Assembly (NCBI RefSeq): GCF_001194135.2
Contig: NC_068981.1
Span: forward strand, 71,771,982 to 71,835,981
Length of the DNA stretch: 64,000 nucleotides
Source of the DNA: Octopus bimaculoides
Taxonomy: Eukaryota
Direction: 5' to 3'
Shown: positions 9,700-60,143 of the stretch, piece by piece
Numbering within the stretch: position 1 is the first letter of the stretch
How the letters are laid out: each line of letters begins with the position of its first letter
The notes under the pieces: model-generated
The model's database searches: none
The model's input: the letters and a program-made list of their open reading frames with translations, nothing else
What the model was told of the DNA's origin: nothing
Translations under genes and position numbers: made by a program

Positions 9700-10820
9700 G
9701 TTAGTGTCTCTGTTCGTTAACTCAAATTATAAATAAGGAAATGGCAAATGTTTTTATTTCAGGTGGGATCAGGCATGGGTGTAAAGTTAAGAAGTTTCAC
9801 AATCATGTAGTTTCAACTTTGATCCTGTTGCATGGCATTTTGGGCAAGTGTCTTCTTTTAACTTCAGGTTGAGCAAGGCTTTGTGAGTGGAATTTTGTAA
9901 GTGGAAACTGATAGAAGCTTGCCTAATGTGCTTGCACTTGTCTTCATGTGTCTTTGCATTGACACAGCTTAGGCAGTAGAGACATTGTTTATGTCCTCCA
10001 TAAACTAAACATCTTACAGCTGTTTGATGTGCAAAGACATGGAGTAAAGGTATCTTATCTGAAAACAAATAGGAATGGCACCAAGAAGGACATACATCTG
10101 TTGAAAACAGCCCAGAGAAATCTCATTCAACACATCAGTATAGAAAAAGCAGGTATAAAAAAAACAATGATAAATTGCTTTTCTATACGAAATAATGGAA
10201 TTTGTTCAAAGCAAAGGAAGTTCGGTATTTTCTGTTTTGTCTAGTTAGATATTTTATTAGCAAGTGCAAGTTCTTGTTGAATGAAATTTGTACAGATTAT
10301 TATGTAAAATGCATGAATAGAGAATTACTTAGCATAATGATTTTTTACTGCTCTTTAATCAGACATAAGTACTACAGTACTGAATTGGATAAAGTCAATG
10401 TTGTAATGTTTATTGCGAATGCTAAGTTAGTATTTGGAAGTTAAAACCTGGATAGGAAGTTGTAATTCTAAGAAGTAGAAGAAGAAATAATCAAAATGTT
10501 TATACTGGATTAAAGATCCAATATGAACATTTAATTACTTTAATGTTCTTGTATTACCTTAATTTTTCATTAATGTTTTCATGCAACTCTGTAAACACAT
10601 TTGGAAAAGTTTCAGTATTTTGTAAAGCCATACCATAAGACCACATGGTCAGATGTTTATGGTTTGACTCGTGGACATTGTTTCGCATAGCAGCTGTTTG
10701 GTTGGTATTTGTTATGAACATTTCTATTTTTATTTTTTAAAGTTAAGTTTCATATAACTTGATTCATTAACAACTTTTATAAATTTGGTGTATGAAATTT
10801 GAGATTTCTTTTAAATTCAG

Positions 10821-10889
10821 AGATAAAACAGAAGATTTAATGGAACTGTCCAAAGAAAAAAAGGAGGAACTATCTCAGAAAGAAAACAG
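10821..10889 (+). CDS. USP47: USP47 exon
   Basis: aattcag|...AG|gtgagt; 69 nt, DKTEDLMELSKEKKEELSQKEN(R), cf. [21 protein letters not shown]. Confidence 0.92.
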
Positions 10890-11974
10890 GTGAGTNNNNN
10901 NNNNNNNNNNNNNNNNNNNNNNNNNNNNNNNNNNNNNNNNNNNNNNNNNNNNNNNNNNNNNNNNNNNNNNNNNNNNNNNNNNNNNNNNNNNNNNNNNNNN
11001 NNNNNNNNNNNNNNNNNNNNNNNNNNNNNNNNNNNNNNNNNNNNNNNNNNNNNNNNNNNNNNNNNNNNNNNNNNNNNNNNNNNNNNNNNNNNNNNNNNNN
11101 NNNNNNNNNNNNNNNNNNNNNNNNNNNNNNNNNNNNNNNNNNNNNNNNNNNNNNNNNNNNNNNNNNNNNNNNNNNNNNNNNNNNNNNNNNNNNNNNNNNN
11201 NNNNNNNNNNNNNNNNNNNNNNNNNNNNNNNNNNNNNNNNNNNNNNNNNNNNNNNNNNNNNNNNNNNNNNNNNNNNNNNNNNNNNNNNNNNNNNNNNNNN
11301 NNNNNNNNNNNNNNNNNNNNNNNNNNNNNNNNNNNNNNNNNNNNNNNNNNNNNNNNNNNNNNNNNNNNNNNNNNNNNNNNNNNNNNNNNNNNNNNNNNNN
11401 NNNNNNNNNNNNNNNNNNNNNNNNNNNNNNNNNNNNNNNNNNNNNNNNNNNNNNNNNNNNNNNNNNNNNNNNNNNNNNNNNNNNNNNNNNNNNNNNNNNN
11501 NNNNNNNNNNNNNNNNNNNNNNNNNNNNNNNNNNNNNNNNNNNNNNNNNNNNNNNNNNNNNNNNNNNNNNNNNNNNNNNNNNNNNNNNNNNNNATATATA
11601 TATATATATACACACACACACATTCAGCATTTCATTGCCTTTAATTAGTGTTCTACATGAATGCATATTATATGCAAATAAATATAGTATGCTTTTTAAG
11701 GAAAAAAAAAATTTACCAAGTAATGCATGAAGAGGGTTTTTTCAGATTTCAAAAGAGTTCTTTCCATTTAAGAGTTTGAATGAAATATGTGAATCGGTTT
11801 TCAAAACTAAATTTGCCTGGGAATGGACCTTCTAAGGAAAATATTCTTGAGTTAATGTGAATTTCATTAAGTTTAAAAGTATTTTTTTAACATTTTAAAT
11901 TAAAAAGTTTTTTTTTAATATAGAAAAAGATTGACTGCTAACTTATATAACATTATTCTATTTGTTTTTGACAG

Positions 11975-12119
11975 GGTAACCAACCTGGTGCATAAGATCT
12001 CCAATTCTCCCAGGAAAGAACGAGCTTTGAAAATTTACACTGAAGATTTAAAATCGACCAGACTTTTGCCATCTCCTGTAGTTCCCTCTGCTGCTGGTGC
12101 AGCTTCTGGGCTAGACTAG
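11975..12119 (+). CDS. USP47: USP47 terminal coding exon
   Basis: tttttgacag|G GTA...GAC TAG; VTNLVHKISNSPRKERALKIYTEDLKSTRLLPSPVVPSAAGAASGLD*; SPRKERALKIY matches the conserved USP47 C-terminal motif SPRKEKALKIY. Confidence 0.93.
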
Positions 12120-15564: not shown

Positions 15565-17680
15565 TAGCAGTATTATTGTAAACTGTTACAAAGGTAAAGG
15601 AGATACACTAGAGAGGGAGAACTACAGGAACATCAAAGTGTTGGACCATGTCATGAAAGTTACAGAAAGATATTGCAAAATTGATTCAGTTAATATGCTG
15701 TTTGGCTTTATACCAAGAAGAGGTACTACCAATGCCATCTTCCTTGTAATCTAAAAGTAAGAGAAATACTTAGCTAGTATCCATAGATTTGTTAAAAACC
15801 TTTAGTAAAAACGTTTAGTAAAAAGGTTAAAACCCTTTAGTAAAGGCTCACACTCTGTCATCTGGTATGTGTGAATGGCTAGTGAGGGCTGTACAAGCTA
15901 TGTACAGAAATACAGTCAGCAACAGAATGAGTTAACAATACATACAGTGATGACTTTGAGCAATGTGAGTGGAGGGGCATCAGTGCTTTGTCCTCAACTT
16001 TCTGCTTATTGTAGTCCTTCAAGCCATAACATGAGTTTAAGGCTAACTGTCTGGGAACAGATGTATGTTGGTAACCTTGTTTTTATACCAGAATCTGAGG
16101 AAGATTTAGAGAAATTCTAGACATGAAAACTTCAACTGGAATTGAAAGGCTTTGAAGTAAACTTGGCCAAGATTAAAAGTTATGCTGAGTAGAAAAGATG
16201 GTTTTGCTGCTATCAGGGAAAGGGATGTGCTCAGTATGCAGTAAAGGAGTAGAAAGAAACAACATACAGCATGCCCAGTATAGACAATGGACTCACGAGG
16301 TGCTGTGGGATTACAGACAGACTAAAAGCAAAGGTATCCTTCACAAATACATTAAGCATGATGAATACTTGATGAATTGATTCCCTCAACTGCTCAGAAG
16401 GATCCCTAGAAGTAGTTAGTTACTTAGGTAACTAACTGATAGTAGGGATGGGTGCTTTGAAAGCATACTAGCCATAGTAAGAATGAGATAGAAAAAGTGT
16501 AGAGAACTATAAACCACTGCTGGCAAAGAAAGGTTTCTCTTCAGAGTGAAAGACAAAGTGTATGATATTTGTTTGCAAAAGGCAGTACTTCATGGTAGTG
16601 GAATGTGGATGCTGTATTTGTGGAGGTTAGAAAGAAATGAGGTAAGTTTGTTTTGCTGGATGTGTAATGTCAGTGCATGAACAACATTGTACAAATGACC
16701 TGAGAGAAAAGTTATTATAAGAAGGATGAAATATAGTTTGTAAGAGAGAAGACTATTGGTGTGGGCATGTGATGCATGTGATTGACAACAAGCTGCATCA
16801 AAGGGGATGAAACTTAAGCTAACACAGCACCTAGAAAGAAATAGAATGAAGTGGTGAAAACTGATTTTGTGATGCTGGACCTCAGAAAAGAGATGTCAGT
16901 TGGTGATAAGCAAACATGGTAGAGAGAAAACTAGCCAAGAGAGTGCTGATGGTCGGGATGCTCTCATTTCCCTGCCTTTCTTTCTCTCACTTCATATCCT
17001 CTTTGCTTGGTGTGCTTTCACAGCATTCCATCCTCTTTTCTTCCCCTCTACTTCTATGGTACTTTATAGCCTCTTTTTCTCTCACTGTCATCTTGCAGCT
17101 TCTCTCCCACTTGAACAGCCACACACTTCTCCTTTATGGCCAATCTCCATGACTCCCCCTACATCTCCCTTTCCTTCAGTGGTCCTCTCCCCACATCTCT
17201 GCAGATCCACATTGCTCATTTCTTTTATGCCCCTCTCCCCAACTTCCTGCCCATGATCACCCTACTCAGCCAACCCCATCACCCTTACTAATCTGTCCCT
17301 TTCTCACCCTGCCACATATCCCTCCTGTTTCTTATATACCCACACCTCAACAGAATCTATTCTGTTACCACCCTCTCACAGCACTAAATATGTTCCTCAA
17401 TACTTTAACCTCTCATAACCTTACCTCACCTGCTGCTATTCTCATTTTGATAATGGTGGTTCTTTAGTCTTGTAATTGACGAAATGACCTTGCTAGTACT
17501 GGTTCCATGGAAAAAGTTTCTAGTACACTCTGTAAAGTGGTTGGCATTAGGAAGGACCTTCAACCATAGAAAGCCTGACAAAATTGAGATATTGGAGCAA
17601 GCTAGGGTCCTCTAACCTGTTGGATCCTGCTGGACAATCTAACCCATGCCAACATGGGAAATGGTTGAAAAATGATGATG
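15565..17680 (+). mobile_element. 5'-truncated degenerate RTE LINE with CT-rich 3' UTR and tail
   Basis: HVMKVTER...FGFIPRRGTTNAIFLV...EKYLA; LERNEVSLFCWMCNVS; ends in aacccatgccaacatgg...atgatgatg tail. Confidence 0.8.
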
Positions 17681-18889
17681 AAGATATATACGTAGGTATG
17701 GAAACTTCGGTCAAAAATCAGTGCAACTAGAAATGCAAATGAAGTTCAATAAAAGCTATATAGATGACTGCAGAGTGAATAGTTATATTTTACAGATAAA
17801 GCTTTAGCTATGAATTATTGCTATTAATAATTCCAAAAGCTTTTTGGAAACTGCTGAAACTATAAATCTGTTATAGGATAATTTAAGTAAGACAAATGCA
17901 AGATCTGTCAAGAGGATAAATCCAGTGTAGGGACAACTATCTAGCAACTGTGTATGGGACATAGAAATACTTAAGACTGTGAGTGAATGCACTGTAAGAT
18001 GACTAGGGGTAGTGATAGACCATTGGAAGAAGGAAAACCCTGAATTGAAACCCTTGCTATATTGTGGGACTCTTTGAAGGAGTTGGAGTACTCTGGCATA
18101 AATCTTGAAATGTTGGTATATGGTTGTTTCATCTTTGTGGCATAAGAAACTCCTTGCCTTACTCAAAAAGTGGATTACATGTAGTACAATCTCAGTTCAC
18201 TATAAGAAAACTTGTGCCCAAGTACCTTTTTGGAATGTGTCATGCTCATGTGATTTCCAACTCTAGTGTGATATTTTTTTCTCAAGCCCTTTGGCAACAG
18301 GGTGGTTTTGATGGTGTGTTTAAATTTAACTGACTAGAAGTATGTAATGAAAACACTGCTCATGGGTGGGTTTGAGAGGTCACCATGCTGTTCATGAATT
18401 GAGGGTGTTCACATTTGAAAATGAATAGACAATCATCACATTTATGTATGTATAAATATATATATATATATGTGTGTGTATGGTGATGGAAATCAACTCA
18501 ATAAATAGTATGACCATTGCTTGTTAATGAGCTGCAAAATGAAGATGGCATTTTAGTTCAGTTGATGATATACAGCGTTTACCATGACTATTAAATAAAT
18601 ATTTCTTTGTGAAGTACAATATAGAATTATGACATTTGGCATTGTGTACAAACAATTGTCTTGTCAGACAAACAATAGGAAGATAATGTTTATTATATGA
18701 TTGGCTGATATGCATTCCTTCAGGTGGGAAAGATTTATTATTAACTTGCTTTTGTTCATGTTCCCTTGAGCTGTTAATAAGACCAGCCTTAGGTAGACAA
18801 ATCTGGTTACAAATTGAACATTTTAGATTTTTTTTTTTTTTAATATCTATGAGGCTGCATTTTCTTGCATCCTGTTTTAATTTTCAGTG

Positions 18890-19260
18890 TTGAATGTGAT
18901 TCTCTTCAAAATACATGGATGCATTGAGTATAGTTTTTCTTCATGCTGCCTCTTCAATTGCAGTTATTTCCCAACTCTGTGTGGATGTTGCCTTTTATTT
19001 TTTTTTTGTTCAGATCAGATTCAAGACGGTCTTTGTAGCTTAACTTTGGTTTGTAAAGAAGTTTTTTTTCCCAGAACATAGTTTTCCATAGAGTTGACTC
19101 TAAGAATTCTTTCATCTTCCATACAGACTACACGTAAGCAAAAGATCTCTGCTTACGATATTGGTTTACCACAAGACCTTGACATCATTCGTATCTTTCC
19201 AAGACATATGCAAAAATTTGCCAAAGACACTTTTGCAGAAAACACTCCCACTGTTTAACA
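18890..19260 (-). mobile_element. RTE/BovB-like LINE 3' ORF relic
   Basis: minus-strand frames give CMEDERIL and KPKLSYKDRLESDL (cf. RMEDxRIP...KPKLRYKD), with frameshifts. Confidence 0.65.
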
Positions 19261-20455
19261 TGGGTTGAATATAACGTCCATGTTCCCCAGTCATACTACA
19301 AAACATGCTTTGAAAATACATATTTGAGTGTCATTTTTTAAAAATATTGATATCATTGAAAATTAATATCTTTACTAAGGTCTCGACAAATATGAAAGAT
19401 ACACTATCTATTTATCTATCTACTTACCTATCTACTCTCCTGTCCATCCAACCATCCATCAATCTGTTGAGTTTCATTATAATGAATATTGACATAATCC
19501 CCTCTCTCTTCGGAGAGGCACAAGCACATACACAGACATATACACACACGGCAGTAACTTCCGCCTACCAAATCCACTCACAAAGTTTTGGTCGGCCTGG
19601 GGCTATAGCAGAAGACACTTGCCCAAGGTGCCACGCTGTGGGACACCAATTGTTCAGAGTGGGCAGTGTGGAGCAGGATGTTTATTGTATCACTATTTTA
19701 GTAATATCAAATGTTACCAAATTGTTTGAGGGCATTTGAAATTAGTGATGTGAAGAATATTGGATTGGACTTGCTGTCACATCTAACAATGCCTCTACTC
19801 TTCATAATTAGCTAACTGTACACCATTTTTTTTTTTACCTGCTCACATCTGCTTTTGTCACTTCTATCTCTCCACTATTCACTTTTTCAGATTCTTCCAA
19901 CCTAGAATGTCAACCCTCTCTTTTTCCCCATATTATTTCTCCAGACATCAGTGTTCAGATGTTCAAACAAACAGTTACAGTTTCAATCTTACTTATTAAA
20001 AAAACAAAATGAGGGCCTGAAAAGTCTGGTTGATGAGTATAAGGTCATCAAAATTGAGTGCCTCTTTACATTTATATCATTTACATAAGTATTGCTTATA
20101 ATACTTTAAAAAAGAAGAGTTGGGATTCATCCAAAGTTAGTGATATTAATGTTTCCTACTAGGAATTGACATTTGGCTATGTATTCAGTTTACATAATCT
20201 TACTGTGCAAGAATAGACAAATAGGTGTTCATGAATAAAAAAAATCATTGCTCTTAACTCACTCCATCTCAAAGTAAACAGATTCAAATCTGATGGGCAT
20301 CAGATAAAAAAGAAAAAGAGCCCACATTTTTGTTCTCATCAATGCCAAGTGTCATTTGATTCTTCTTCCATCACTTCCATCTATTTCTTCTTATTACACT
20401 ATATTACACTTACTATGCGACAAAGAATTTTAACAATATATTTCAGTTGTTTTAA

Positions 20456-20671
20456 CCCTTTCGTTACCAACTCAGCTGAAACCGGCTCTGGTTCTAAGTA
20501 CAAATGTCTTGTTTTCATAAGTTTTGAATAAAAATCTACCAAACCTTAGCCACAATTTATGTTCCTAACACTAACTGAATGATAATTCAGTTATTTTACT
20601 AAATCCTTTGTTATATTTAGATTAATTGAAAGAAACACAGAGCATCTCAAAATAATATGGTAATGAAAGGG
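20456..20671. mobile_element. piggyBac-type MITE, second family (related copy about 53245-53432)
   Basis: TTAA|CCCTTTCGTTACC...GGTAATGAAAGGG|TTTA. Confidence 0.75.
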
Positions 20672-20675
20672 TTTA

Positions 20676-20890
20676 GGCAGTAAGCTGGCAGAATTGTTAG
20701 CATGCTAGACAAAATGCTTAGTGGTATTTTGACTGTCTTTACATTCTGAGTTCAAATTCTGCTGAGGTCGACTTTGTCTGTCATCCTTTCAGGGGAAATG
20801 AAATAAAGTACTCGTGGAGCACTGGGGTTGATGTAATCAATTAACACCCTCCTCCAAATTTCAGGCCTTGTGCCTATAATAGTATATTTT
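20676..20890 (+). mobile_element. tRNA-derived SINE family C (MetaSINE-like core; copies at 22585-23010, 50745-50935, 51515-51650, 53555-53775, 60218-60860)
   Basis: gtaagctggcagaattgttag...gagttcaaattctgctgagg (B box)...tcatcctttcagggg...aaataaagtac...ctggggttgatgtaatc; the Meta-domain assignment is from recall. Confidence 0.7.
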
Positions 20891-21244
20891 AGTTGCTGTG
20901 ACTGTTTTAGGATTTGATAGTGAAGCAAATGATTTCTGAATGAAGATAAGTAGTTTAATGAGTGAGAGATTTTTACTACTATATCATCAGTAAATGAAGT
21001 AATTCATAAATTACAGCAAGTTATGAACTAATTATTAAAGAGATTCATGTCATTCTTTGACAATCACCAAAACAATTTTCTAAGTTTGAATTAAAACCTT
21101 GGGAAAGTATCTACTTAGTGCCAAAAGGCATAATTCAACACTCATGTTCAATATCAATGATATGAGATACCAATGTTCAGTTGCTGAATAAATAAAATCA
21201 CCACTCCAGTATGTGATCTAATACATCTAAAAATTATATAACAT

Positions 21245-29705: not shown

Positions 29706-31185
29706 CACAATGTAACTATATATTGGACTGAATATATAGACACTAGGGTAAGAAAATTGTCAATTATAAGTTAAATTATTACATCATTTACACACAAAAG
29801 GGAGTAATTTATTTAATGTTTTATCAGTCAAGCTCTCTCACAACTACTGATCTTTTTTATTACCACTCATTCAATTTTTAGGTCTTTCAATATATAATAT
29901 AATTACAACATTAGCAATTATTATGCTATTAGAAATGCTGGAAAATAGAAAAAATAGAAAAATAGAAAAAGGACCCTGTAATAACACAAAATTTCAAGCT
30001 GAATAGTCATAAATGTAACTGAATTTTAAAAATATTCATATCTCAAAGCATTTGTTTTCCAACAATAACAACAACAACAACTACATTCTGTAATTAACAA
30101 CATATTTAATTGATCACAGTTTAATGGATTCTATTGAAAAACTGTCATTTTGGGCCTTTTAAAAGCACTACAAAAGAGGAAGATGCCTTCTCTAAAAATA
30201 TTTCAATGAGCATAACTAAAGATGCTAGTCAATATTATACATTGGTGAGCTGGCCAGAAAATTTACATAACAGTCCTTGTAATGTTTAAAAATTGTTTGA
30301 ATGTGACGTATTGTAGTTTCAGATTTAAATGAAGGGCTTCCTTTTATGACAGTAAAATTTGTGAAGTTTATCATGACAGGCATGTAATTCTCAATTAAGC
30401 AACAATAAATTCATGCAGACGAAATGTAAAGTAAAAGGGTGTAGGAAAATCCATTTGTCATCTTGTGTGCTCTTGTAAAACTGTTGCTTACTTAATTTCT
30501 GCCAATTTCTGTAAACGAAATATAGTTTGAGCATTATACATTATATTTTATACATGCTATCATATAGCATTTTGTTTTTTTCCAAAACATTTTTCAATTT
30601 TTATAAAAAATAGTCCATTAGCAAATATTATTTTGCTATAGTATATATTATGAGTTATAGCTACCTTACATACCTGTGTATATATATCATTCTTAATTAC
30701 AGCTTTTTTTTATTTCAACAATAAACTACTTAATTGTATTTAGATTTATGAAAATTATATAAATATTTTCTTTAAGCATGTTTGAAATTTGTGCGCTTCT
30801 ATTTTTATGTACGTGTGCGTGTTTATATGCATGTGTGTGTGTATATATATATATAAATATATATGTATATATATAAAAATTCAGGATTCAAGTAAATCAG
30901 GTCCTTAAATAGTAAAGCACCAAGGTCAGGCCAGTCAAATTGCTATTGCGTACAAACAGTATCTGAGGAACAAATATGTACTTACTAAAGTAAACACGCA
31001 TTTATATTCCAGTTGTATGTACAATCACAAATGGCTGACTGAATATACTATGAGTCTCAAGGCTGTACATAGGTACAAACACTGCACCAATTGTACTGCA
31101 CTCAATAGACTCCAAATCCATGTGAACTGCAGGTTTCAAGTAAGGTGAATAATAAGCAAATAACAACAGATGGATTGTGGTTCAC

Positions 31186-31500
31186 TGACTACAACTGTTT
31201 CGGACATGTTTTTTTATTGATGAATAGAATTATGTCATGCAAAAAAAAAAAAAAGATGCTTTCATCAGGTGAATATATGTATGAATTAAACATTTCAAAA
31301 CATCTTAAATTCCAAAGCAAATGCCATTTCATGACACTCTGACCAAAATTTAGAGAGTCACAAAATAGCATTTGCTTTGGAATTTAAGATGCTTTGAAAT
31401 GCTTAATTCGTACATATATTCACCTGATGAAAACGGGTTTCTCTTTTGCATGATGTAATAATTCTTTTCAATAAATACACATCTGAAACAACTGTAGTGA
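31186..31500. repeat. foldback/MITE with ~150-bp inverted arms
   Basis: 31186-31340 aligns to the reverse complement of 31352-31500; 11-nt loop gaccaaaattt. Confidence 0.85.
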
Positions 31501-31527
31501 GTGAAACACAACCCATCTGTTATTTGT

Positions 31528-31566
<39 letters not shown>

Positions 31567-32061
31567 CCTACCTATCTATCTATCTATATATATATAGGTA
31601 TAGTAGAACAAATGAGAAATAGAATTCAATACCTGAATGTATATACTTATTTTATTTTTAATTGGCAGAAAATCACGAAAGTAACTCAAGGGTCAAGAGT
31701 TTCATGCATGGCACTTGGCACTTATCAAATTAGGTTTGATAAGTGCTATGAATGTAACTATCAGCCCTTGAGTCACTTTTGTAACTTTCTCATGATTAAA
31801 AGTAATGAAAGTATATATACACACATGCATATATTTATATATATACACACAGACACACACATATATATGCATGCAAATTTTTGTGTTTATCTAGTCATTT
31901 ATTTCTACATATAAAATACAAAGAATCAACTAAACTAACAAGCTTCCACTTTCTTCCTTTTTGTTACTTAAATAGTTAAAAAAACTCTCAAAATTATTCA
32001 CAACCTGCTGCAAAAGAACTTTCCTATCCCTTAATTGTTATCCTTAAAAAGAGGATTAGGA

Positions 32062-35000
32062 TTAGTCAAATCTTTTGTTGCCTTTATTTATACTATCACG
32101 TAAGTCTGGTTCTGAATGAAAAGTATGCATTTTACCATTTTCTTCCTCAGCTGCTTCTTCTGAAGCTGATTTTTGTAGTTGCTTCAGTTTGTCAATACGC
32201 TTTCGATCTGGTTCGAAAGAAGCAAAAAGTTCATGAAAACTATGACATCTTTCAGCATGATCATTGACTTCATTTTCAGCAACTTTTTCAAATGATATTG
32301 GACTGTCAGTAGCATTGACAAATTCTCTTGCAGATGATATACTCCAGCGACTCCTACTTTTATTTGATGAAGCTGGTGATGACTTTTCTCTCTGTTTTTC
32401 ATTATTAGAAGATTCATTTGGTGTTTCTCCACCTTGTTCATCTCTCACATTATCATCAGACGAAGAGAGGCACTTCTCAGAGCTTTGTGACCGTTGTCTA
32501 GGTATGGGTAAAGGAGGTTTAGAAGCAGTGGAACTATCTTCTGTAGCTAAATTTTCATCAGAGAGTAATGGCTGAGGACTCTCATTTTCTTGCATCATCA
32601 TTTGTTGAGCTATTACTATTTTTTGTCTTGCTTTTGCTTCATGTCGCTGTTTTACATTTCGTGGAGTCATAACTTTAGAAGATGATTGACTTTTTGGAGA
32701 AGATTTTGAGCTTTGTGAATCATCAGAAAACTTATTTCCTTGTTCTTCACTAATTTCACTGATTGGTCGTCTTTCATGTCTCGACCTGGTCCTAACTTTA
32801 CGATGACGATCTTCATCACTTGAGCTGAAAAGATCCAACATTTTGGCTATACCTTTTGAAACTGGTCGTTTTTTCTGTTGTACCATTTCAGCCGAACTGT
32901 CACTTGAACATGACTGTTCTTGCCTTAATTGTTGCTGGAAGTTTTGTTTTGAAATATTTCCATTTTCCTGAATTTCTCTATTTCCATTACTACTCTGGGA
33001 TTGACTACTAGAAGTAGTGTGTTTCATATCAAAATCAGGTGGTGTTGACTTTCTATGATTTCTTTCGTCATCTCGTCCTGATTTACGATGTAGACTAGAA
33101 GATCGTGGCGGAGGTTTGGGTCGAGGTGTACCATTAATTAGTCTTGAACTACCGTCTGAAGTGTCAGATCGTGCAGAAGATTTTGACCGTGATCCTTTTT
33201 CTACTGTTATTGAGGACAAATATACACTTGGACCATCATTACCTTCTTTACCACTATTTCTACTCTGGAATTTCTTACTTTCTTGGTTCATTTCATTTGC
33301 TAGTGACCTCCTTTGGCGTCTTGTTCTTGCACGCCGTGTAGGAACATCAGAAGTAGACAATACTGAATCTCCTGATGCATCTTCAGTTTTGATTAAAGGT
33401 GATTCAGTAACTGAAGGAGAATTTGATGTCTGAGATTCAGTTTTTATTGGGTATTTGCTACCAATATCTTTCACTGGAACTTGCATTAATTCTCGATATC
33501 TTTGACTAGTGGTTAATCCATGGTCAGATGTTGACAAGTAGCGCATGTCAGAATGAAATGAGTCTGAACTGACATGTCCAGTTGTATTATCATACAGCTG
33601 GGAAAATGAAGAAGATAATCTAAAACAATGGCTTTCTTGGCTTGAATATGGAGAAGAAAAATTGCTTGGTTTGTTGCAGTCCAATAAGGTTTCATTGCCG
33701 ATATTAAGTTGGGTGTAAATTTTTTCCAATTCATTAAGTGCTTCACTAAGTTTAGCTTTCCTGTTTACAAAATGTTCTGTATTAGATTTTTTGCTGCTTG
33801 AAGATTTAACATCAGCTGAAAGCATTGCACTTGTTGCAGGAGAGAATTTCTTGAGAGTGTTGAGAATTCTGTCAAGATTTGATTCATCTGCTTTGAGTAT
33901 CTTTGATTTAATTTCTGAAAGCTTATCTTCGACTTGACTTGCAAGAACTTTAAGTTCCTCTATATTTTCTTCTGGTTGAGCAGGTGTGTAGGTAGTTGGC
34001 TTTTCATTGTCTCTAAAAGCAAACATGACATTATTATTTCCTTCCTGGATATTCTTAATTAGAAAGGCTAAATCATCACCAGATGGAGAACGTTCAACCA
34101 AACCTGTGTTGATGAGTTTCTCTTTCAGCACAGAGGGATCTAGTTGATAGTTACCATTGACAACATTTTCATACTGTTTCTCTCCTAGTTTAGTCATAGA
34201 TTGGTACATCAAATTTCCATGGTTGCCTTCTTGAAGTTGTAAAAGATTTTGTTGGGAAGAAAACTCAGGACGTTCTGCAGAGGGACCGCTATTACAAGCA
34301 GCCTTTAACATTTGAGAATGAACTTCTAATTGATCTCCATGGTAAGACCCTGAATGATAAGACAGGGGCCTTTTTGGTGAACTTGATTTGTGAGACATGT
34401 CCGAATGGCTGCCAAATATCTTTCTTTGACTATTTGACATTCTGTTACCAAGGACTGGCTGTAGATCCAAAAGAACTTCATCTAATGCATTCATATTAGC
34501 AATCTTGTTTGAAGATTTGAGACTTGAAGTTGAATATGGTTTGGATTGAGGTTTATTATCAGCATTAGATGCTGGAAAAGAAGGTAAGGAAAAAGGTTTC
34601 ATATGCTGAGTAGATGCTGCATCCATTTGACAAGAAGTAAATGCTTTTGTAGAATCAATTTCAGTTGAGTTCTTTCTTTCTGAAGGACTTTCTTTCATAA
34701 GATGATCAAAGTTTGTTAATTCCTCAATTTCTTTCCAAAAAGGGTCTTCAGAAAAGGGGATTGTTTCTAGAGTTCTGGCTGTAACTCGTTCAATACTAAC
34801 TGGTCCTTGATGACTGTCCATTTGAGGTGACCATATCTCTGAATCTTTGAGTTTTTCTTGCATTCCACCAATCAAATTTTTCCAGTTACCATGTTCTGCA
34901 TTTCTTCTGTTTGATACCATTTGACTAATGCTATGGTCAGATGTTATATCACTTTTCCTTCTGAGGAAATTTCCAGTTGGTATGTTGGTATTGTTTATAT

Positions 35001-38000
35001 CCTGAGGATACAATACAGTTTTCTTCTCATTTGTTTTCAATTCCAAAGTAGTAGATCCACTATTTGGTGCAGAAGCAGCTGTATGATGCTTTGGAATAAA
35101 AAACTGATAATCTTTGTTTGTCAGTGGGCTGGAGGCTGGTATAAGTGTATCACCTGTGTTATTACTTGAAAAATTTCTTACTGGAAGGAAAAGAGGGCTG
35201 TCTATTGTTGGTGATTTATTTATTCCTTCATGATAGCTATGGCTGAGACCATTTGCAGTTGTGTTATTTACATCTGGTGATATTTGGAGAAGACTTTTGT
35301 TTATATCGACCATAATTTTTGAATGGGTTTTACCTTTAAATAAGTCACCATCAGATATAGACCCAGTTTGTGAAAGACTTCTGGTCATATTGCTTTTACT
35401 CATATTTTTATTTACATTAACTGGTTTGGTAGGTACATCTGAAGAATAAGGCTTTGTCGCTACAGAATCTTCATCGATAACAGCTAAATATTTTGACCAC
35501 TCACTCGCCATATGTTTTACTGTTGTTGGCAAATGGTTCTCCCCAATGTCAGGAATTTCTCCTGTTTTACTGTCTACTGGTGGATTTTTGAGTGACGTTT
35601 TCATTTTAGTTTCCCACTTTTTCACTCTTTCAGCTACTTCAATGTCATATTCTACATCAGAAAACATTCCAGTATCTTTAATTGGTAAGGCTAACTCATT
35701 TTCTGGAGTTTCACTTTTACTACTAATATTAGCTTTAGTTGAGCTTACTATAGAGGGTGCAGAACAGCTTAAAGATTTTTTAATTACCTCAGGAGAGCTT
35801 TTTATTTTGTTAGATTCTGACACCAAAATACTTTCTGAAATAGTTATAAGTGGTTTATACTGGGTCATAGTTTCAGCATTTTCCAATGGCTTTGATGGCT
35901 GATTATCTCTCTGGTTTTGGTTAGCTGCTGGTTGGGCATTATCATGAGATTTTAGCCAAGACATACAAGATTGGAATGCACTACTCTCACAGACAGGGGA
36001 CTGTGTAATTAAAACTGGCTCTGAAATTCTAATTGGGGTTGGGCGAAGAATTGGCTGTCTATTTTCAGTATAAATTTGTGAAGATGTAATGGGTTGTTTG
36101 TTTCTAGGAGTAACAGGAAGTAGTTTTGAACCTGTACACTGTTGTGACATTAAGACTGGTTCAGAGGACATTTTTAGTAGAACTGGTTTTGAAGTTGTTA
36201 CTAATTCTGGAATTTTAGGCATAACTGGCTGTAACATTGGAATTGGTTCTGAGACCTTTGGTAAACCAGATGCTTCTGATGCTGATATAGGTTTCTCATT
36301 TTGTGAGTTTGAATGCTGTGTTAATTGAAGAGTATTATTGACACTTGTTGGTTCTATGTATTGCTTATTTGATTCTAACAGCTCATCAAGTGAATCTCCA
36401 TCACTGTAAGATTTTGATGAATAATTTGTTGTATGTTTTATATTTGATTCTTTGGAATTTGAATCTATGCCTGTTTTAGATCTACGATTTTTTTGTTTTT
36501 GCTCAGCTTTGGATTTTTCCTTTTTTTGTTCTTGGAAAGGATGTTGATCCACTTTGGCGGGTAATTGAGGTGATTTTGGTTGTGTTGGAACATATGGCTG
36601 AAAACTCAATGGGCGAGTGTTCAATTGAGGATTATGCCCATTAGATAAGAGAAAAGCATTTTGCAAGGAACTATTTGTTTCAAAGTTTCTGTTTTGATTA
36701 ATGAAATTTTCAGGTTGTTGTTGCTGAAATGTTTGTTGCTGAAATATTTGTTGTTGTTGTTGCTGCTGCTGCTGAGGAGGAGGAGGAGGAGGAGGACTGA
36801 TACATTGGATATTGTTCCCAAAAGCAAAGGCTGTGGAATTTCTGTTTGGATTGCTTGCAGCTGCCTTCCTGTTTTCACACTGAAAATTTGTATTTATTAT
36901 TTGAGAATCTGTTCCATTTCTATTTTCTTTCTGTAAAGAATTGTTGAAATTATTTGATAACCCAATATTTTGGTTATTTTTGCGAGGATATTCAACAACA
37001 ACCATTCTTGGTTTTGGTTTTTCTGGTTGGCTTGGAGGTTTGTTATCTCTTTTGAATGTAAGAGGTGGAGACAAGCTTCCACTTGCAGTAAATCCTAGAG
37101 ACATAGGTCGGTAGCAAGGAAAAGAAGCTGTCATTTGAGCTGGCTTTGAAACTTCTGTCTTTAGTTTTGGTTCTAGAACAATTTGATCACCTGAAATATT
37201 AAGATAATTTGTGTATTCTTGACCAGATCTAGCGGTTACACCTTCATATTCCCCTATGGAGGCTTTTCTACCTTTTCCACGGCCTGCTTGAACTTGGGAA
37301 AGTCTCTGACGAATTTGGTTTGAAATTTCAGAGTGTGGGTTGGTTTCTTCATCAGATGTGGGATAATTTTCCATTCTCTGTTGTCTCATTTCTTCTAACC
37401 GCTGAAACTTAGCTTTTTGAGGAATGGCTGCATTAACTCTGTTAGGATTACTCCATGTATTTTGATGGTCCTGCTTATTTCCACTTGAAGGTGATGGAAT
37501 ACCTGCATGTGGTCGATTGATTGAATTTGGCATGGTTTGGCTTTTGTTTTCTTGTTGTTGTTGTTGTTGTTGTTGTGGTGGTGGTGGTGGTGGAGTGATT
37601 AGTTTCCATTCTGTTGCTTTGGTTTTATCATGCCGTTTTGTCTTTTTTATCAAAAGTGGATTCCGTGTCCATCGCTTTGGTCCACTATCTCCTGAATCAG
37701 TGTCACTGTCCGATAGATTAATGTTAACGATATCATCTTCGGAGAACTGGCGCAAACATAATGGATGAGGACTTTTGCGTGGTTCATGACTAATAGCCCA
37801 TTGTGGTCCAGATGTATCTTGTCTACTAGGGCTTAGATGTCGTCGAGGACCTTCACTTCTTGAACGATGACGTGCTTTGGTTTGACTATCACTAGGCACA
37901 GCAACTCTTCTTCCTTGTCTTTCATGTCTTTCCATCAAAGGGTCATCTGTTGCTTGACTGGTTGCTCTTGACCCTTGACCTCTAGACAGACTTTTCAGTT

Positions 38001-38013
38001 TCTCATCTGCACT
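32062..38013 (-). CDS. giant terminal exon (5,952 nt, 1,983 aa + stop) of an unidentified, largely disordered Ser/Gln/Pro-rich protein
   Basis: uninterrupted ORF 37938-32062 extends in frame 25 codons (SADEKLKSLSRGQGSRATSQATDDP) up to acceptor ttactttttatataatttcag at 38014+; in-frame TAA just upstream of that acceptor; no TE protein motifs recognised. Confidence 0.88.
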   Translation of the reverse strand, partial: SADEKLKSLSRGQGSRATSQATDDPLMERHERQGRRVAVPSDSQTKARHRSRSEGPRRHLSPSRQDTSGPQWAISHEPRKSPHPLCLRQFSEDDIVNINLSDSDTDSGDSGPKRWTRNPLLIKKTKRHDKTKATEWKLITPPPPPPQQQQQQQQENKSQTMPNSINRPHAGIPSPSSGNKQDHQNTWSNPNRVNAAIPQKAKFQRLEEMRQQRMENYPTSDEETNPHSEISNQIRQRLSQVQAGRGKGRKASIGEYEGVTARSGQEYTNYLNISGDQIVLEPKLKTEVSKPAQMTASFPCYRPMSLGFTASGSLSPPLTFKRDNKPPSQPEKPKPRMVVVEYPRKNNQNIGLSNNFNNSLQKENRNGTDSQIINTNFQCENRKAAASNPNRNSTAFAFGNNIQCISPPPPPPPQQQQQQQQQIFQQQTFQQQQPENFINQNRNFETNSSLQNAFLLSNGHNPQLNTRPLSFQPYVPTQPKSPQLPAKVDQHPFQEQKKEKSKAEQKQKNRRSKTGIDSNSKESNIKHTTNYSSKSYSDGDSLDELLESNKQYIEPTSVNNTLQLTQHSNSQNEKPISASEASGLPKVSEPIPMLQPVMPKIPELVTTSKPVLLKMSSEPVLMSQQCTGSKLLPVTPRNKQPITSSQIYTENRQPILRPTPIRISEPVLITQSPVCESSAFQSCMSWLKSHDNAQPAANQNQRDNQPSKPLENAETMTQYKPLITISESILVSESNKIKSSPEVIKKSLSCSAPSIVSSTKANISSKSETPENELALPIKDTGMFSDVEYDIEVAERVKKWETKMKTSLKNPPVDSKTGEIPDIGENHLPTTVKHMASEWSKYLAVIDEDSVATKPYSSDVPTKPVNVNKNMSKSNMTRSLSQTGSISDGDLFKGKTHSKIMVDINKSLLQISPDVNNTTANGLSHSYHEGINKSPTIDSPLFLPVRNFSSNNTGDTLIPASSPLTNKDYQFFIPKHHTAASAPNSGSTTLELKTNEKKTVLYPQDINNTNIPTGNFLRRKSDITSDHSISQMVSNRRNAEHGNWKNLIGGMQEKLKDSEIWSPQMDSHQGPVSIERVTARTLETIPFSEDPFWKEIEELTNFDHLMKESPSERKNSTEIDSTKAFTSCQMDAASTQHMKPFSLPSFPASNADNKPQSKPYSTSSLKSSNKIANMNALDEVLLDLQPVLGNRMSNSQRKIFGSHSDMSHKSSSPKRPLSYHSGSYHGDQLEVHSQMLKAACNSGPSAERPEFSSQQNLLQLQEGNHGNLMYQSMTKLGEKQYENVVNGNYQLDPSVLKEKLINTGLVERSPSGDDLAFLIKNIQEGNNNVMFAFRDNEKPTTYTPAQPEENIEELKVLASQVEDKLSEIKSKILKADESNLDRILNTLKKFSPATSAMLSADVKSSSSKKSNTEHFVNRKAKLSEALNELEKIYTQLNIGNETLLDCNKPSNFSSPYSSQESHCFRLSSSFSQLYDNTTGHVSSDSFHSDMRYLSTSDHGLTTSQRYRELMQVPVKDIGSKYPIKTESQTSNSPSVTESPLIKTEDASGDSVLSTSDVPTRRARTRRQRRSLANEMNQESKKFQSRNSGKEGNDGPSVYLSSITVEKGSRSKSSARSDTSDGSSRLINGTPRPKPPPRSSSLHRKSGRDDERNHRKSTPPDFDMKHTTSSSQSQSSNGNREIQENGNISKQNFQQQLRQEQSCSSDSSAEMVQQKKRPVSKGIAKMLDLFSSSDEDRHRKVRTRSRHERRPISEISEEQGNKFSDDSQSSKSSPKSQSSSKVMTPRNVKQRHEAKARQKIVIAQQMMMQENESPQPLLSDENLATEDSSTASKPPLPIPRQRSQSSEKCLSSSDDNVRDEQGGETPNESSNNEKQREKSSPASSNKSRSRWSISSAREFVNATDSPISFEKVAENEVNDHAERCHSFHELFASFEPDRKRIDKLKQLQKSASEEAAEEENGKMHTFHSEPDLRDSINKGNKRFD

Positions 38014-38762
38014 CTGAAATTATATAAAAAGTAATACTTAAAGAAAATGACTAAATGTGAAAGAAATCATGTCATATATCTTTCAATTAAAAAAAATTAC
38101 AAAAATATAACATTTGAAAACATAATTCTTGAAAGTATTAAAAGTCGCATGCAATCTTGAGATCATGGCTGTTGGAAAATGATTAATGTGGTGTATCTAA
38201 AATTATTACATCAAATTATAAAGAATTCAACTGTTGTAGTATTTGCACAGAATATGCAACATTACTTCTTTCTAACAAATTGAACATGTCTGTGTGATTA
38301 AGAAATTTCCCTATTATAGCCCTGGGTTGATCAGTGCCTTGTGAATGAATCTGGCAGATAGAAACTTTTGTATGTTATTGTCATTGTCATTGTTGTTGTT
38401 GGTACTGCTGTGTAACCATTGCCATCATTGTTGTCATCCTCTTGTCCTCATTGTTCTTGTCATTGTTACCACCATCACCAACACCACCACCACCACCACC
38501 ACCACCACTGCCACTGCTGCTCCTCCCACCACTACCCTCATTTTAATGTCACATGGGTTAGATGGAATTTGTTGATGTGCATTTTCAATCAATGGATACA
38601 CTTGTTGTTGCCAACCCTCATCTGTTTCCAAGTGAAGTAATATTTTCCCATGACCAGACACTGCTTGCATGACAGTAACGTTTATTTACAACAATTACAT
38701 GATATCAAGGCAAGGAATCTGTAACACGTATACACACAAACACACACACACACATGTATATT

Positions 38763-39484: not shown

Positions 39485-39776
39485 NNNNNNNNNNNNNNNN
39501 NNNNNNNNNNNNNNNNNNNNNNNNNNNNNNNNNNNNNNNNNNNNNNNNNNNNNNNNNNNNNNNNNNNNNNNNNNNNNNNNNNNNNNNNNNNNNNNNNNNN
39601 NNNNNNNNNNNNNNNNNNNNNNNNNNNNNNNNNNNNNNNNNNNNNNNNNNNNNNNNNNNNNNNNNNNNNNNNNNNNNNNNNNNNNNNNNNNNNNNNNNNN
39701 NNNNNNNNNNNNNNNNNNNNNNNNNNNNNNNNNNNNNNNNNNNNNNNNNNNNNNNNNNNNNNNNNNNNNNNNNNNN

Positions 39777-48837: not shown

Positions 48838-49206
48838 ACTACACACACACACATGCACACGCACACATGTGCTCACACACACACACATGCACACACACAC
48901 ACACACACACATGCACACACACACACACACATACACACACAAACACACAAACACACACAAACACACAAACACACACACAAAGATTGATATATATACATAA
49001 ACAGATACAAACATACATACATACATACATGCTTGCATACATACATACATACATGCATGCATGCATACATACATACATGCGTGCATATATATACATACAT
49101 ACATACATACGTACATACATACACACATACATACATGCATGCATGCATACATACATACATGCATGCATACATACATACATACATACATACATACATACAT
49201 ACATAN
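48838..49206. repeat. compound (CA)n/(CATA)n/(CATG)n simple repeat
   Basis: directly visible; runs into an N gap. Confidence 0.95.
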
Positions 49207-49376
49207 NNNNNNNNNNNNNNNNNNNNNNNNNNNNNNNNNNNNNNNNNNNNNNNNNNNNNNNNNNNNNNNNNNNNNNNNNNNNNNNNNNNNNNNNNNNNNN
49301 NNNNNNNNNNNNNNNNNNNNNNNNNNNNNNNNNNNNNNNNNNNNNNNNNNNNNNNNNNNNNNNNNNNNNNNNNNNN

Positions 49377-53300: not shown

Positions 53301-54484
53301 AATGATGAAGAATTCAGTAAAATAGCTCAGTCATTATTATGCTGGTATTTGGAATATAACATGAAATTACTTTAATACAGGAACTTTGTATCACAGAACA
53401 AAGTGCAGTCTCAGGTGAGTTAGCATCAAATAGATGCATACTTATTCCACCATGAATCATATATGCACTATATGAGTCTCCAGTATTTGACTTCATATTG
53501 TAAATTGATTCAGTTACATTGTAACATTATATTGTAACATCATTTTGTACACGAAGGTGGTGAGCTAGCAGAATCATTAGTACACTGGGCAAAATGCTTT
53601 CTAGCGTTTCATCTGTCTTTATGTTCTGAGTTCAAATACCACCAAGGTCAACTTTGCTTTTCATCCTTTCAGAGCCAATAAAATAAATACCAGTTAAATA
53701 CTGGGGTTTATGCAATCAGCTTACCTCCACCACTGAAACTGCTGGCCTTGTGCCAAAATTTGAAACCAATATTATTTTGTACATGGATGTAGTTTACTTA
53801 AGCTTGGAATACATACAATGAAGCTTTAAATTCTTGAATTTATTGCTGAAAATGACACTTCCTTCATTCCTTTGTCATAAGCTGAAGAATTACTCATCTA
53901 TAATTAACTACCAACCAGATCCAGATAAATACCTTTTCTATGTCAACAAATTTATAGATATGCAATTTTGCAAAACTGCCCTCTTGCAATTATATCACCA
54001 GAAATATGATATCTGTAGTCCAATTCCAGATACAAGGCTTTACTAAATCCTGTACATTTCAATCAACTATGACTTCTTTTTACTATAACCTATATTACCC
54101 TCATAGACTTAGCTCCGCAAAGAAGGATAGATCTTTAATAGGTAGAAAACATAAGTTTGTTTCCCTGGCGTGACACCTGTAAGAAGAGCTTCATCTGAGC
54201 ACAGTCAGTATGATTACTTTGAAAACACATAATTAATTTCTCTAGCTGACCCTTTTTATACAGCTGCAGTTGTGCTGCCACCAGCACCACCACTACCACT
54301 ACCATCACCACCACTACCATCACTACCACTACCATCACCACCACCACCACCACTGCCGCTGCCAACACCACCACCACCACCNNNNNNNNNNTGCAGTTGT
54401 GCTGCCACCAGCACCACCACTACCACTACCATCACCACCACTGCCACCACCATCACCGCCGCTGCTGCCGCCACCGCCGCCACC

Positions 54485-57600: not shown

Positions 57601-60143
57601 GGATTTAAGAGTATGCCTTTACATGAATTTATTATTATTTTCATTTCTGGATATATGAATTTGAAATGCTTTTGTACCTTAATATGATATGAAAGAAAAT
57701 ATATAAAGGAGATTTCTTGTGTAAAAAACGCATAATTAAATTGCTCAGTGAGCTGAGAAATTGGTCAGTATTAAAGGCATCAGCTAATATGTAGAAGTGT
57801 AAAGACATGCGTTGTAAAAATTATGGCACCAGTAGTGTTTTAAGGGTTAGAATCAATTGTTAAATGTAATATATTTTAAATGAATATAAAAACATAATTA
57901 AAATTGTTTTTAATGATCTTATTAGAAATAACATTGCTTGTCCTTTCAATCAATGAAGAAAAGAAAAAAAGGCAATTACAACATCAGTTTGAAAAGTTTT
58001 GTTTTATATAAAACTATTTATCAGATTACTAACATATGCTGGCGTTGCTGTCTAAGCTATTCAGTCACAAGAATTTGTTGTTACAGTTATAAATAACTCT
58101 TAGCTATATTTAATATGAATAAAATGAGCATTTATTCTGGAGCATATACCCAGTGTGTTCTACTAATATATTCCTATAGTTTCTAGCTATTTTATACTTT
58201 TATTTAAATATATGAGAGGTATTTAATAATGTTCAAGTTTAACACATTGTGAAGATCAGTACACATTACTTTTAAATAAATATCCGTGTGAACCAATAGG
58301 TAATTCAATAAAAACTTATGAAACAAACATTTTGTTGAGAAGTATTCAACATATTTTTCATAAATATACTTATTAATTAAATTAACAAGATTTTTACATT
58401 ATGTGGGGAGAAGAAATTTAATTTCAGACGGTTTAAATCAATTTAACATGTGATATAGAATTTTAATTGCAAAACCACTCCATTAAAAATGTTCAGAGAT
58501 GTACTCATTCATATGTAAACAATTATACAAATGCAGATTTGCATGTTTGCATAAAGTGAATATTTTTAAGTTTTAAAAATATATAGCTATCGAAAGCGAA
58601 TTATGGAGGCATGGCTTTGTAGTTAAAGTTTGATGCAGAGCCAAATAGTTTCAGGTTCAAAACAACCATACAACACCTTGGGCGAGTGTTTTCTACTATA
58701 GCTTGAGGTTGACTAAAGCCTTGTAAATAGATTTGGTACATGGAAACTAAAAGAGGCTCGTCATATATATATANNNNNNNNNNNNNNNNNNNNNNNNNNN
58801 NNNNNNNNNNNNNNNNNNNNNNNNNNNNNNNNNNNNNNNNNNNNNNNNNNNNNNNNNNNNNNNNNNNNNNNNNNNNNNNNNNNNNNNNNNNNNNNNNNNN
58901 NNNNNNNNNNNNNNNNNNNNNNNNNTATATGCATGTGTGTGAGTGTGTGTGTTTTCATGTATGTATGTATCTGTGTGTGTGTATGTGTGTGTGTTTGCAT
59001 GTATGTGTATATCAGTGTGTGTGTGTGTGTGTGTGTGTGTGAGTGTTGCTTTGTCTTGACATTGTGCTAATGTCTCCATCATGCAAGCATTGTTGTTTGC
59101 TTGCAATCTTCCATGAAAACATGTCTGGTAATTGCATTGATCCCATTTGAAGGACTAAGAGAAACAGATGCAGCTTGGCAATAAAAAGAACATCCAGCTG
59201 TAGAAAATCTGTCCTGATCAATTTTGTCTGACCCATGTAGGCATAGAAAGCAATGATGATGATGATCAATATCCCTTGAGTAAGAAGGTGCTTGCATTAG
59301 TGATAAAGGCTATTGAGGAATTTGTGAGGTACCCTATTTTCCCCCCAGGTAACCATTCTCTTTTTTGGGGACTATTTGTTTTTACATTTTAATTTTGCTT
59401 TCATAGTTTTTCATTTTAATACAAATATGGCTTGTTTTATTCTCTCTAAAACTTCTACAATTTTTTCAACCTACTTTTGTAATTGCCTCTATTTTATGGC
59501 CTTGTGGCAAATAAAAAAAAACTGATTATCAATATTATTGCTATTTTTTCATCTTGCCCAAATTGTGTTTCATAGCTATACTGTATTAGAAAAGTATTAA
59601 TCTAGAGGTAAGCATGATTTGTATGACAGGTCAGTAGTCCTAGGTATGAGCAGCAGTGGAGATGGTAGTAATTTTAGACTAACATCCAGTTATGTTTTGA
59701 CAGGCTCTGGAAGACTGAATTTCTTCAGACATCGAGGATTCTTAGGAACATTTGGATTAGTTATAGTGGGTGACTGAAATGGCATCTTAGATATACATAG
59801 AGATTGTGTGGAAGTAGATAGCTGAAGGCTGGCTGTAGATTGACCACAAGAACTTGGAAGAGGATCATGATTTTTGTGAGTTGGTAAGCTGGGGTTGTGT
59901 GCTGGCTATCAACAAATTACTCTGTATAATTGTCCTCCTTTCTGAGGCACCTTTCTCATTAATTTGTTGTTCTGTACTATTTGTTTATTAATTTATTGAT
60001 GTCATTACTTTGTTCATCTCATTCTTTTATTCTATGTAAGCTCTTTCTGGTTCTTGTTTGTTGTTTACTTTTGTATTGTCATCTACATCTTGTGCTCTTG
60101 ATTCCAATAAAAGAAATTATTATTATCATTATTACTATCACCA

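Follow-up and report, generated by a model that had tools for sequence, protein, structure and literature searches.

The 64,000-nucleotide stretch of the Octopus bimaculoides genome analyzed here (contig NC_068981.1, positions 71,771,982 to 71,835,981; hereafter the window, whose own numbering is used throughout) carries on its minus strand a single giant coding exon of the gene LOC106879036, located at 32062..38013. A preliminary description of the window had presented this exon as an orphan. It is instead part of an annotated gene, joined by splicing to small 5' exons, and its orthologues occur throughout Mollusca; what is new here is that the supposed orphan is the body of a phylum-wide gene, with no characterized member and no relative detected outside the molluscs in our searches. 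That this is a real, conserved coding gene is, in our judgment, practically certain. The product has about 2,000 residues, most of them predicted to be disordered. From its sequence architecture we regard it as moderately probable that this protein serves as a multivalent adaptor or scaffold, in which short linear motifs would make the contacts and phosphorylation would provide the regulation.

The open reading frame (ORF) on the minus strand runs stop-to-stop from 38013 to 32062 and comprises 1,983 sense codons followed by TAA (32064-32062). It opens in phase 0 at 38013 with AGT GCA GAT GAG AAA (SADEK), the first codon, AGT, encoding the Ser of the SADEKL sequence, and an AG acceptor lies at 38015-38014 with a T-rich tract directly 5' of it. 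This stretch is coding sequence and not a product of chance, because the probability of meeting no stop over 1,983 codons is approximately 1e-56 (stop trinucleotides occupy 6.3% of positions on the minus strand), stop-free runs in the window peak at 1,985 codons over all six frames, the second longest having 240, the remaining five frames of the exon contain 79-232 stops each, and the GC content by codon position is 46/43/22%. The intact ORF had been placed exactly at 32062-38013 in the preliminary description, as judged from the stop-to-stop frame and the AG acceptor, and its assignment as a genuine giant coding exon is upheld by the match to an annotated protein and by canonical splice sites.

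The exon translation is 100% identical to residues 20-2002 of XP_014783927 (2,002 residues; P0001 in our searches), which RefSeq lists as 'uncharacterized protein LOC106879036 isoform X1 [Octopus bimaculoides]'; isoforms X1-X3 are annotated. The gene model is already public in RefSeq and the exon itself is no discovery. LOC106879036 spans 147 kb on a chromosome of 199.9 Mb (GCA_001194135.2). The giant exon encodes 99% of the protein and is the last coding exon in X1 and X2, the first 6-19 codons (O. bimaculoides isoforms) being supplied by small alternative 5' exons outside the window. The N-termini of the O. bimaculoides isoforms read MRRVRL with or without DRFGTITSVQIQK; those of O. sinensis and O. 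vulgaris read MKKLALGLLK, which bivalves and gastropods also have. A search of the window for these first coding exons (MRRVRL, DRFGTITSVQIQK and MKKLALGLLK) found them absent, and positions 38014-64000 are therefore intron. The 3' splice site of this phase 0 intron, an AG with a T-rich tract, lies at 38014..38040 on the minus strand, and the same junction (...CSFQ|SADEKL) was found in a genome contig of a second cephalopod (L001). No papers were found under the gene, protein or UniProt identifiers, and a topical search of the literature returned nothing relevant.

The window also accounts for the shorter isoform. An alternative internal 5' splice site, G|GTAAAA, is present on the minus strand at 32134..32136 (donor 32136|32135), so that in isoform X3 the exon ends at 32136, and an alternative terminal micro-exon is located at 30492..30510 on the same strand, with its acceptor AG at 30510-30509 and a 17-nt coding part at 30508-30492. 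The micro-exon reads (G)AA ATT GGC AGA AAT TAA, that is, (E)IGRN followed by a stop. The X3 C-terminus, ...EEENEIGRN, is explained because the window holds both this internal donor and the micro-exon behind its AG; it replaces ...EEENGKMHTFHSEPDL..., and the last 24 codons, including those for FHSEPDL, are lost. A C-terminus of (E)IGRN is also annotated in isoforms of O. sinensis and O. vulgaris, and the GT of the X3 donor is missing at the matching position in L001. The splice sites of the annotated isoforms are present and canonical in the window.

A first word-indexed search returned 20 proteins of 1,867-2,781 residues, none of which has a Pfam domain. Identity to the octopus protein was 77% in Argonauta, 49% in two other cephalopods (one represented by a genome contig, the other by a 7.7-kb Logan contig) and 25-34% in bivalves, gastropods and a chiton. 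The bivalves in this set were Mizuhopecten and Mytilus, and the gastropods were Patella, Aplysia, Bulinus, Candidula, Bradybaena, Elysia and Plakobranchus; name look-ups and a full-length profile search added Haliotis, Physella, Lymnaea, Littorina, Pomacea, Mya, Argopecten and Potamilus. The chiton Liolophura sinensis has a family member (E = 1e-13), and the family therefore spans Aculifera and Conchifera. An exhaustive phmmer scan with residues 553-1462 against 1.84 billion representatives retrieved only 35 proteins at E up to 1e-3. Word-indexed searching with a full-length profile gave mollusc matches only, and with an islands-only profile it gave only mollusc-like fragments of 219-613 residues, apparently due to a length filter. 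Two of the named matches are not labeled as mollusc, a protein of the frog Hyla sarda and an entry denoted P0051. No credible relative outside the molluscs was found in the exhaustive scan or in the word-indexed searches; by sequence comparison, the family is apparently detected only in Mollusca.

P0051 (964 aa) is a clear family member that was deposited as 'MAG: hypothetical protein [Candidatus Thiodiazotropha sp.]' (MAG, metagenome-assembled genome) on a 4.6-kb contig. Since Candidatus Thiodiazotropha lives as a symbiont of lucinid clams, the entry is most likely a host (clam) contig that was binned into a bacterial MAG.

Membership of the family is evident from full-length collinear similarity, seen as multiple collinear high-scoring segment pairs, with ordered islands of conservation from SADEKL to FHSEPDL. 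The uncharacterized orthologues, namely LOC115209857 of O. sinensis, LOC101864682 of Aplysia, LOC110442886/KP79_PYT03324 of Mizuhopecten, LOC126831453 of Patella and LOC135464562 of Liolophura, share these properties: they are collinear, 1,900-2,800 residues long, carry the same islands in the same order, begin their large exon with [ST]ADEKL and lack any Pfam domain. All of the full-length matches are to uncharacterized proteins, so that the finding which the preliminary description named as able to overturn its view, a full-length match to a characterized family, did not turn up. Its suggestion of a lineage-expanded protein finds no support. The Octopus matches form one cluster with one gene symbol per species (LOC106879036, and LOC115209857 in O. 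sinensis), a search for internal repeats in the LOC106879036 protein found none, and the giant exon is present in a bivalve too.

Relatives were informative on exon structure, expression and selection. In L001 the same exon measures approximately 6.2 kb. The 7.7-kb Logan contig (L002, from SRR25114244) contains a 918-nt leader, the spliced junction MKKLALGLLK|SADEKL, an ORF of 2,059 codons, untranslated regions and a terminal poly(A) run; the spliced first exon, the leader and the poly(A) run identify it as mRNA-derived. Expression of the gene is thereby supported, as shown in a relative of O. bimaculoides, and several more homologues were found on Logan contigs of 6-8 kb. The products of L001 and L002, which come from two non-octopod cephalopods, are 82% identical, and the Nei-Gojobori ratio of non-synonymous to synonymous substitution (dN/dS), a check that the preliminary description had proposed, is 0.108 at a dS of 0.91. 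In every 150-codon block the ratio lies between 0.05 and 0.19; purifying selection has therefore acted along the whole length rather than on the islands alone. In a bivalve genome contig (L003, ENA ERZ26168041), a 0.9-kb exon at 10001-10939 starts with SADEKL, a 6.3-kb intron follows after about residue 330 (donor GAG|GTGAGA), and the second part, at 17078-20939, belongs to an ORF called at 1,678 residues. Because the bivalve also carries a multi-kilobase exon, such an exon dates back at least to a common ancestor of bivalves and cephalopods. In coleoids all coding sequence after the short N-terminal exons lies in one exon, whereas the bivalve has this extra intron; the coleoids simply lack it, and the giant exon is no octopus oddity.

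The composition of the protein places it among intrinsically disordered proteins. Relative to SwissProt, Ser is enriched 2.2-fold, Asn 1.8-fold, Gln 1.8-fold, Pro 1.6-fold and Lys 1.35-fold, which bears out the richness in Ser, Gln, Asn, Pro and Lys reported in the preliminary description; Arg stands at 0.98-fold. Order-promoting residues account for 22%, vs. 34% in SwissProt, and in the charge-hydropathy plot a mean normalized hydropathy of 0.384 falls on the disordered side of the Uversky boundary at 0.419. An AlphaFold2 model of residues 790-1470, built from a 22-row alignment, had a mean predicted local distance difference test (pLDDT) score of 46 and a predicted template modeling (pTM) score of 0.21, with 479 of the 681 residues below 50; its only confident segments are helices that coincide with conserved islands. 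Low hydropathy, few order-promoting residues and low pLDDT outside short segments thus agree, and the LOC106879036 protein is predicted to be mostly disordered.

The earlier statement that no folded domain is recognizable was confirmed as far as Pfam, PDB and AlphaFold2 reached. Pfam returned no family for the LOC106879036 protein at E up to 1 and none for the 20 homologues at E up to 0.01; with four sub-regions and E up to 10, only sub-threshold coiled-coil families appeared. Sequence and profile searches of PDB, using full-length and islands-only alignments, gave nothing below E = 0.1. Within the coding sequence two compound runs stand out, a P6Q8 run that forms a low-complexity insertion (37552..37593, minus strand, aa 160-173) and a P7Q9 run (36748..36795, minus strand, aa 426-441). 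The P6Q8 run is shorter in O. sinensis and Argonauta. O. bimaculoides has the longest versions of both runs, which in O. sinensis, Argonauta and other cephalopods are shorter or missing. In this respect O. bimaculoides differs from the orthologues, and both runs look like recent microsatellite-type expansions inside coding sequence.

Alignments of 12-20 members, the chiton included, revealed approximately 15 conserved islands of 9-45 residues each, whose order is the same throughout, with linkers of variable sequence and length between them. Residue numbers follow isoform X1 (XP_014783927), and all window coordinates of the islands refer to the minus strand. Island 1, SADEKLKSLSR (aa 20-30, 37981..38013), has the mollusc consensus [ST]ADEKLRSLGK. 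Island 2, ARHRSRSEGPR (aa 66-76, 37843..37875), has the consensus KRRSRSEGP, in which R-R-S-R-S may be a basophilic-kinase-type site. Island 3 (aa 120-146, 37633..37713) is composed of an acidic Ser/Asp run, the sequence K-x-W-T-[KR]-N-P-L and then a basic cluster, IKKTKR. Island 4 (aa 219-260, 37291..37416), K[FY]Q+LEEMR++R...TSDEE..P...IS..IRQR or, in another rendering, KYQ+LEEMRKKR...TSDEE..P..RISRLRQRA, contains both a charged helix and a TSDEE cluster of CK2 type. Island 5 (aa 557-573, 36352..36402) is DSLDELLESN.QY[IL]E, also written DSLDELIESNIQYLE.

Island 6, GMFSDVEYDIEVAERVKKWETKMK or GMFSDVEYDIEVSERVKKWE (aa 801-824, 35599..35670), varies hardly at all between chiton and octopus, and AlphaFold2 placed a helix at aa 806-828 with a pLDDT of about 72. 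Island 7, WSP..S.QGPVSIERVTARTL.TIPFSEDPFWKEIEE.T.FD, also written WSP..ES.QGPVSIERVTARTLQTIPFSEDPFWKEIEE.T.FD (aa 1078-1122, 34705..34839), is the densest in invariant columns, with a short helix predicted at aa 1110-1126. Island 8, ALDEVL.D[IL] (ALDEVLEDI; aa 1194-1203, 34462..34491), was defined from the alignment, and island 9, NGNYQLDP..LKEKL..TGLV (LKEKLLSTGLV; aa 1305-1326, 34093..34158), was modeled as a turn and helix with a pLDDT of about 73. Alignment and model together delimited island 10 (33697..33969) as a pair of amphipathic helices (aa 1368-1411 and 1436-1458) connected through a variable loop; their hydrophobic residues, read from the alignment, follow a 4-3-4-3 heptad spacing. 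In the AlphaFold2 model of residues 1300-1465 these helices are the most confident parts (pLDDT 80-90), and a pTM of 0.25 indicates no confident packing. A Foldseek search of PDB with this model gave no match with E below 2.

Toward the C-terminus, island 11, G[IV]A.M.D.FSSSDE[DE]R (aa 1738-1755, 32806..32859), forms an acidic serine cluster, and an island KPP..P at aa 1849-1860 was seen in the alignment. The C-terminal islands (aa 1940-1992, 32095..32253) comprise ER..SFHEL...FE.D.KR, L[RQ]K.ASE and FHSEPDL; in another rendering, ERPHSFHEL.A.FE.D.KR...LRKCASE covers 1940-1972 and FHSEPDL covers 1984-1992. The first two carry invariant R-x-x-S and [RK]-x-x-S sites. An EF..I.KSFQ..LDEV island found in other family members is lacking in coleoids.

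From this architecture a mechanism can be proposed. Each island would act as a docking site, either a short linear motif or a helix formed upon binding, for a folded partner. The heptad helix pair at aa 1368-1458 may mediate self-association or bind a helical partner. The invariant R-x-x-S sites (KRRSRSEGP, ER.HSFHEL and LRK.AS) could allow phosphorylation-dependent partner binding under basophilic kinases, and the acidic serine clusters (TSDEE, FSSSDEDR and SDSDSD) could do likewise under CK2-type kinases. Alternative first exons, together with the alternative 3' splice that removes FHSEPDL, would tune both protein ends. In this sense the "scaffold" of the preliminary description is retained as the most reasonable functional class for a long, polar, disordered protein with motif islands, and as an unproven one. 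A further-reaching version, possible but rather doubtful in our estimation, is that the family is a mollusc-specific invention, a disordered hub of about 2,000 residues whose roughly fifteen docking motifs have been invariant since the chiton-conchiferan split, and that at least one motif (GMFSDVEYDIEVSERVKKWE or PVSIERVTARTLQTIPFSEDPFWKEIEE, for example) defines an undescribed motif-domain interaction with a conserved machine of trafficking, autophagy or the cytoskeleton.

Several observations weigh against the adaptor/scaffold interpretation or limit its reach. We infer the mechanism from sequence architecture alone. When the islands were compared manually with the RVxF, SxIP, AKAP, WH2, RPEL, xLIR and FFAT consensus patterns, no strict match was obtained; the invariant Glu 1381 breaks the AKAP RII-binding pattern, and xLIR fails at position -1 or +1. 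Our assignments to the basophilic-kinase/14-3-3 and CK2 motif classes are assumptions as well, and match no strict published consensus. Two elements are leads at most, as neither fits a strict pattern: GMFSDV with its acidic helix (GMFSDVEY...), which we take to resemble an extended LC3-interacting region or an FFAT-like element, and SEDPFWKEI, which contains DPF/DPW and WxxI. The linkers are also under low dN/dS, so that function is not limited to the islands. The expression evidence comes from relatives' contigs, and the restriction to molluscs is bounded by the limited sensitivity of HMMER.

Other explanations of the exon were considered. The surrounding sequence contains relics of transposable elements (TEs) and simple repeats, a setting in which an ORF might be expected to be fortuitous, pseudogenic or of TE or viral origin. 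Such an origin is already refuted, and we grant it next to no credence: besides the vanishing chance probability and the strong periodicity of GC by codon position, dN/dS in relatives is 0.11, collinear orthologues of similar length occur across Mollusca, Pfam found no TE, reverse transcriptase or capsid domains, and the canonical splice sites agree with the annotated isoforms. The preliminary description drew an analogy with piccolo/bassoon, giant ankyrins and exophilins, which would make the product a scaffold of the neuronal cytomatrix or of the membrane skeleton. With such proteins the LOC106879036 protein shares only gross features, namely its giant exon and its length, polarity and disorder, and the analogy failed every domain and sequence test. 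Neither the double zinc fingers of Piccolo and Bassoon nor the PDZ and C2 domains of Piccolo were found by Pfam; Pfam likewise detected no ANK repeats or ZU5-ZU5-UPA-death module as in giant ankyrins, and no N-terminal Rab-binding Slp-homology domain or C-terminal C2 domain as in exophilins and synaptotagmin-like proteins, either in the protein or in its 20 homologues. A missing domain cannot be hidden in other exons, because only 6-19 residues (O. bimaculoides isoforms) are encoded outside the giant exon. The phmmer scan pointed the same way, the frog match being rejected and the MAG match being probably clam DNA. We therefore consider a scaffold of this type very unlikely.

A nuclear disordered protein acting in chromatin, RNA or nuclear speckles, comparable to the giant-exon proteins SRRM2, SON and ANKRD11, is an unlikely explanation, but it is the one among these to which we attach the most weight. 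Basic clusters that are candidate nuclear localization signals (IKKTKRHDKTK, just after island 3, PTRRARTRRQRRS and RHRKVRTRSRHERR) and a C-terminal third rich in Ser, Lys and Arg speak for it. However, Arg is not enriched over the protein as a whole, there is no RRM, SR-repeat, ANK or other nuclear domain, and the basic clusters are loosely conserved and could equally bind membranes or the cytoskeleton. Distinctly improbable, and a little less so than a cytomatrix scaffold, is the view that LOC106879036 is orthologous to a known bilaterian family, such as the villin-headpiece (HP) or the death-fold/CARD proteins, the relationship being masked by strong divergence of fast-evolving disordered sequence. 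UniProt labels two sacoglossan members 'HP domain-containing protein', and tandem CARD-like repeats of Hyla sarda show about 25% identity to the helix pair (E = 7.5e-4). Yet Pfam VHP and CARD match none of the 20 members, the headpiece pattern LPxWK..LKK..GLF is lacking, the frog score adds up seven repeats that match the same helix, AlphaFold2 modeled aa 1300-1465 as 28-residue helices (pTM 0.25) with no six-helix bundle, and Foldseek found no PDB match at E below 2.

The individual candidate identities were accordingly dropped. For the headpiece, both 'HP domain-containing' entries are among the 20 members without VHP, and a regular-expression search found the signature absent. For the death-fold/CARD identity, Pfam gave no CARD even at E up to 10, the helices are long, and the Foldseek result was empty. 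The Hyla sarda relationship is a weak, repeat-inflated match in which seven CARD-like repeats each align at about 25% to one helix. For the TACC family, TACC_C scored 19.7 bits against a gathering cut-off of 29.9 and covered one helix pair only.

Elsewhere in the window, a USP47 orthologue is represented by its last approximately nine coding exons on the plus strand (1272-12038), located by tblastn with a human USP47 query. With this query the matched stretches measure 51-138 nt each, in agreement with the earlier remark that all USP47 exons are under 150 nt. USP47 is convergent with LOC106879036, tail to tail and about 20 kb from the giant exon, which does not lie within it. Shortly 3' of the giant exon's stop codon, at 31162-31524, is an inverted repeat about 360 nt long, nested and near-perfect, that resembles the hairpin of a miniature inverted-repeat transposable element; complementarity between its inner arms (31245-31340 and 31352-31447) is 86%, and a (TATC)17 microsatellite adjoins it at 31529-31595. 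Two TE relics were noted: a 240-residue ORF at 62517-63239 (minus strand) with Pfam zf-RVT, zinc-binding in reverse transcriptase (E = 1.4e-6), and a 139-residue ORF at 359-778 (plus strand) with a sub-threshold PHD-like finger (22.6 bits vs. a cut-off of 24). Assembly gaps in the form of N runs occur at 10896-11593, 39485-39776, 49206-49376, 54382-54391 and 58774-58925, several of them flanked by TA, AC or TG dinucleotide or other short-period repeats. The intron of LOC106879036 is therefore partly unassembled, and a small exon could in principle hide there.

Phylum-restricted families that are strongly constrained and yet almost wholly disordered are rarely studied. For the present one, conservation has been reduced to an explicit list of motifs and one helix pair, which are directly testable as peptides, and the lineage-specific cell biology of cephalopods is of wide interest.

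Among known systems, disordered scaffolds encoded by giant exons include Bassoon and Piccolo, the insert of 480-kDa ankyrin-G and giant ankyrin-B, and MAP1B. The LOC106879036 protein resembles them in having a multi-kilobase exon, a long polar unstructured chain and short elements presumed to be functional. In contrast, there is no sequence similarity to them, and their defining folded domains are absent; the giant exon in those systems is an insert into a folded-domain protein, whereas in LOC106879036 it makes up essentially the entire protein. Motif-rich hubs, such as endocytic adaptors and AKAP-type anchoring proteins, offer a second comparison. Likenesses to these hubs lie in the short islands, some of them amphipathic helices, set in variable disorder, in the clustered phospho-acceptor sites and in the alternative termini; the difference is that no island of the LOC106879036 protein fits a strict published consensus. 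LOC106879036 is an uncharacterized, apparently mollusc-restricted addition to the general class of giant-exon disordered proteins.

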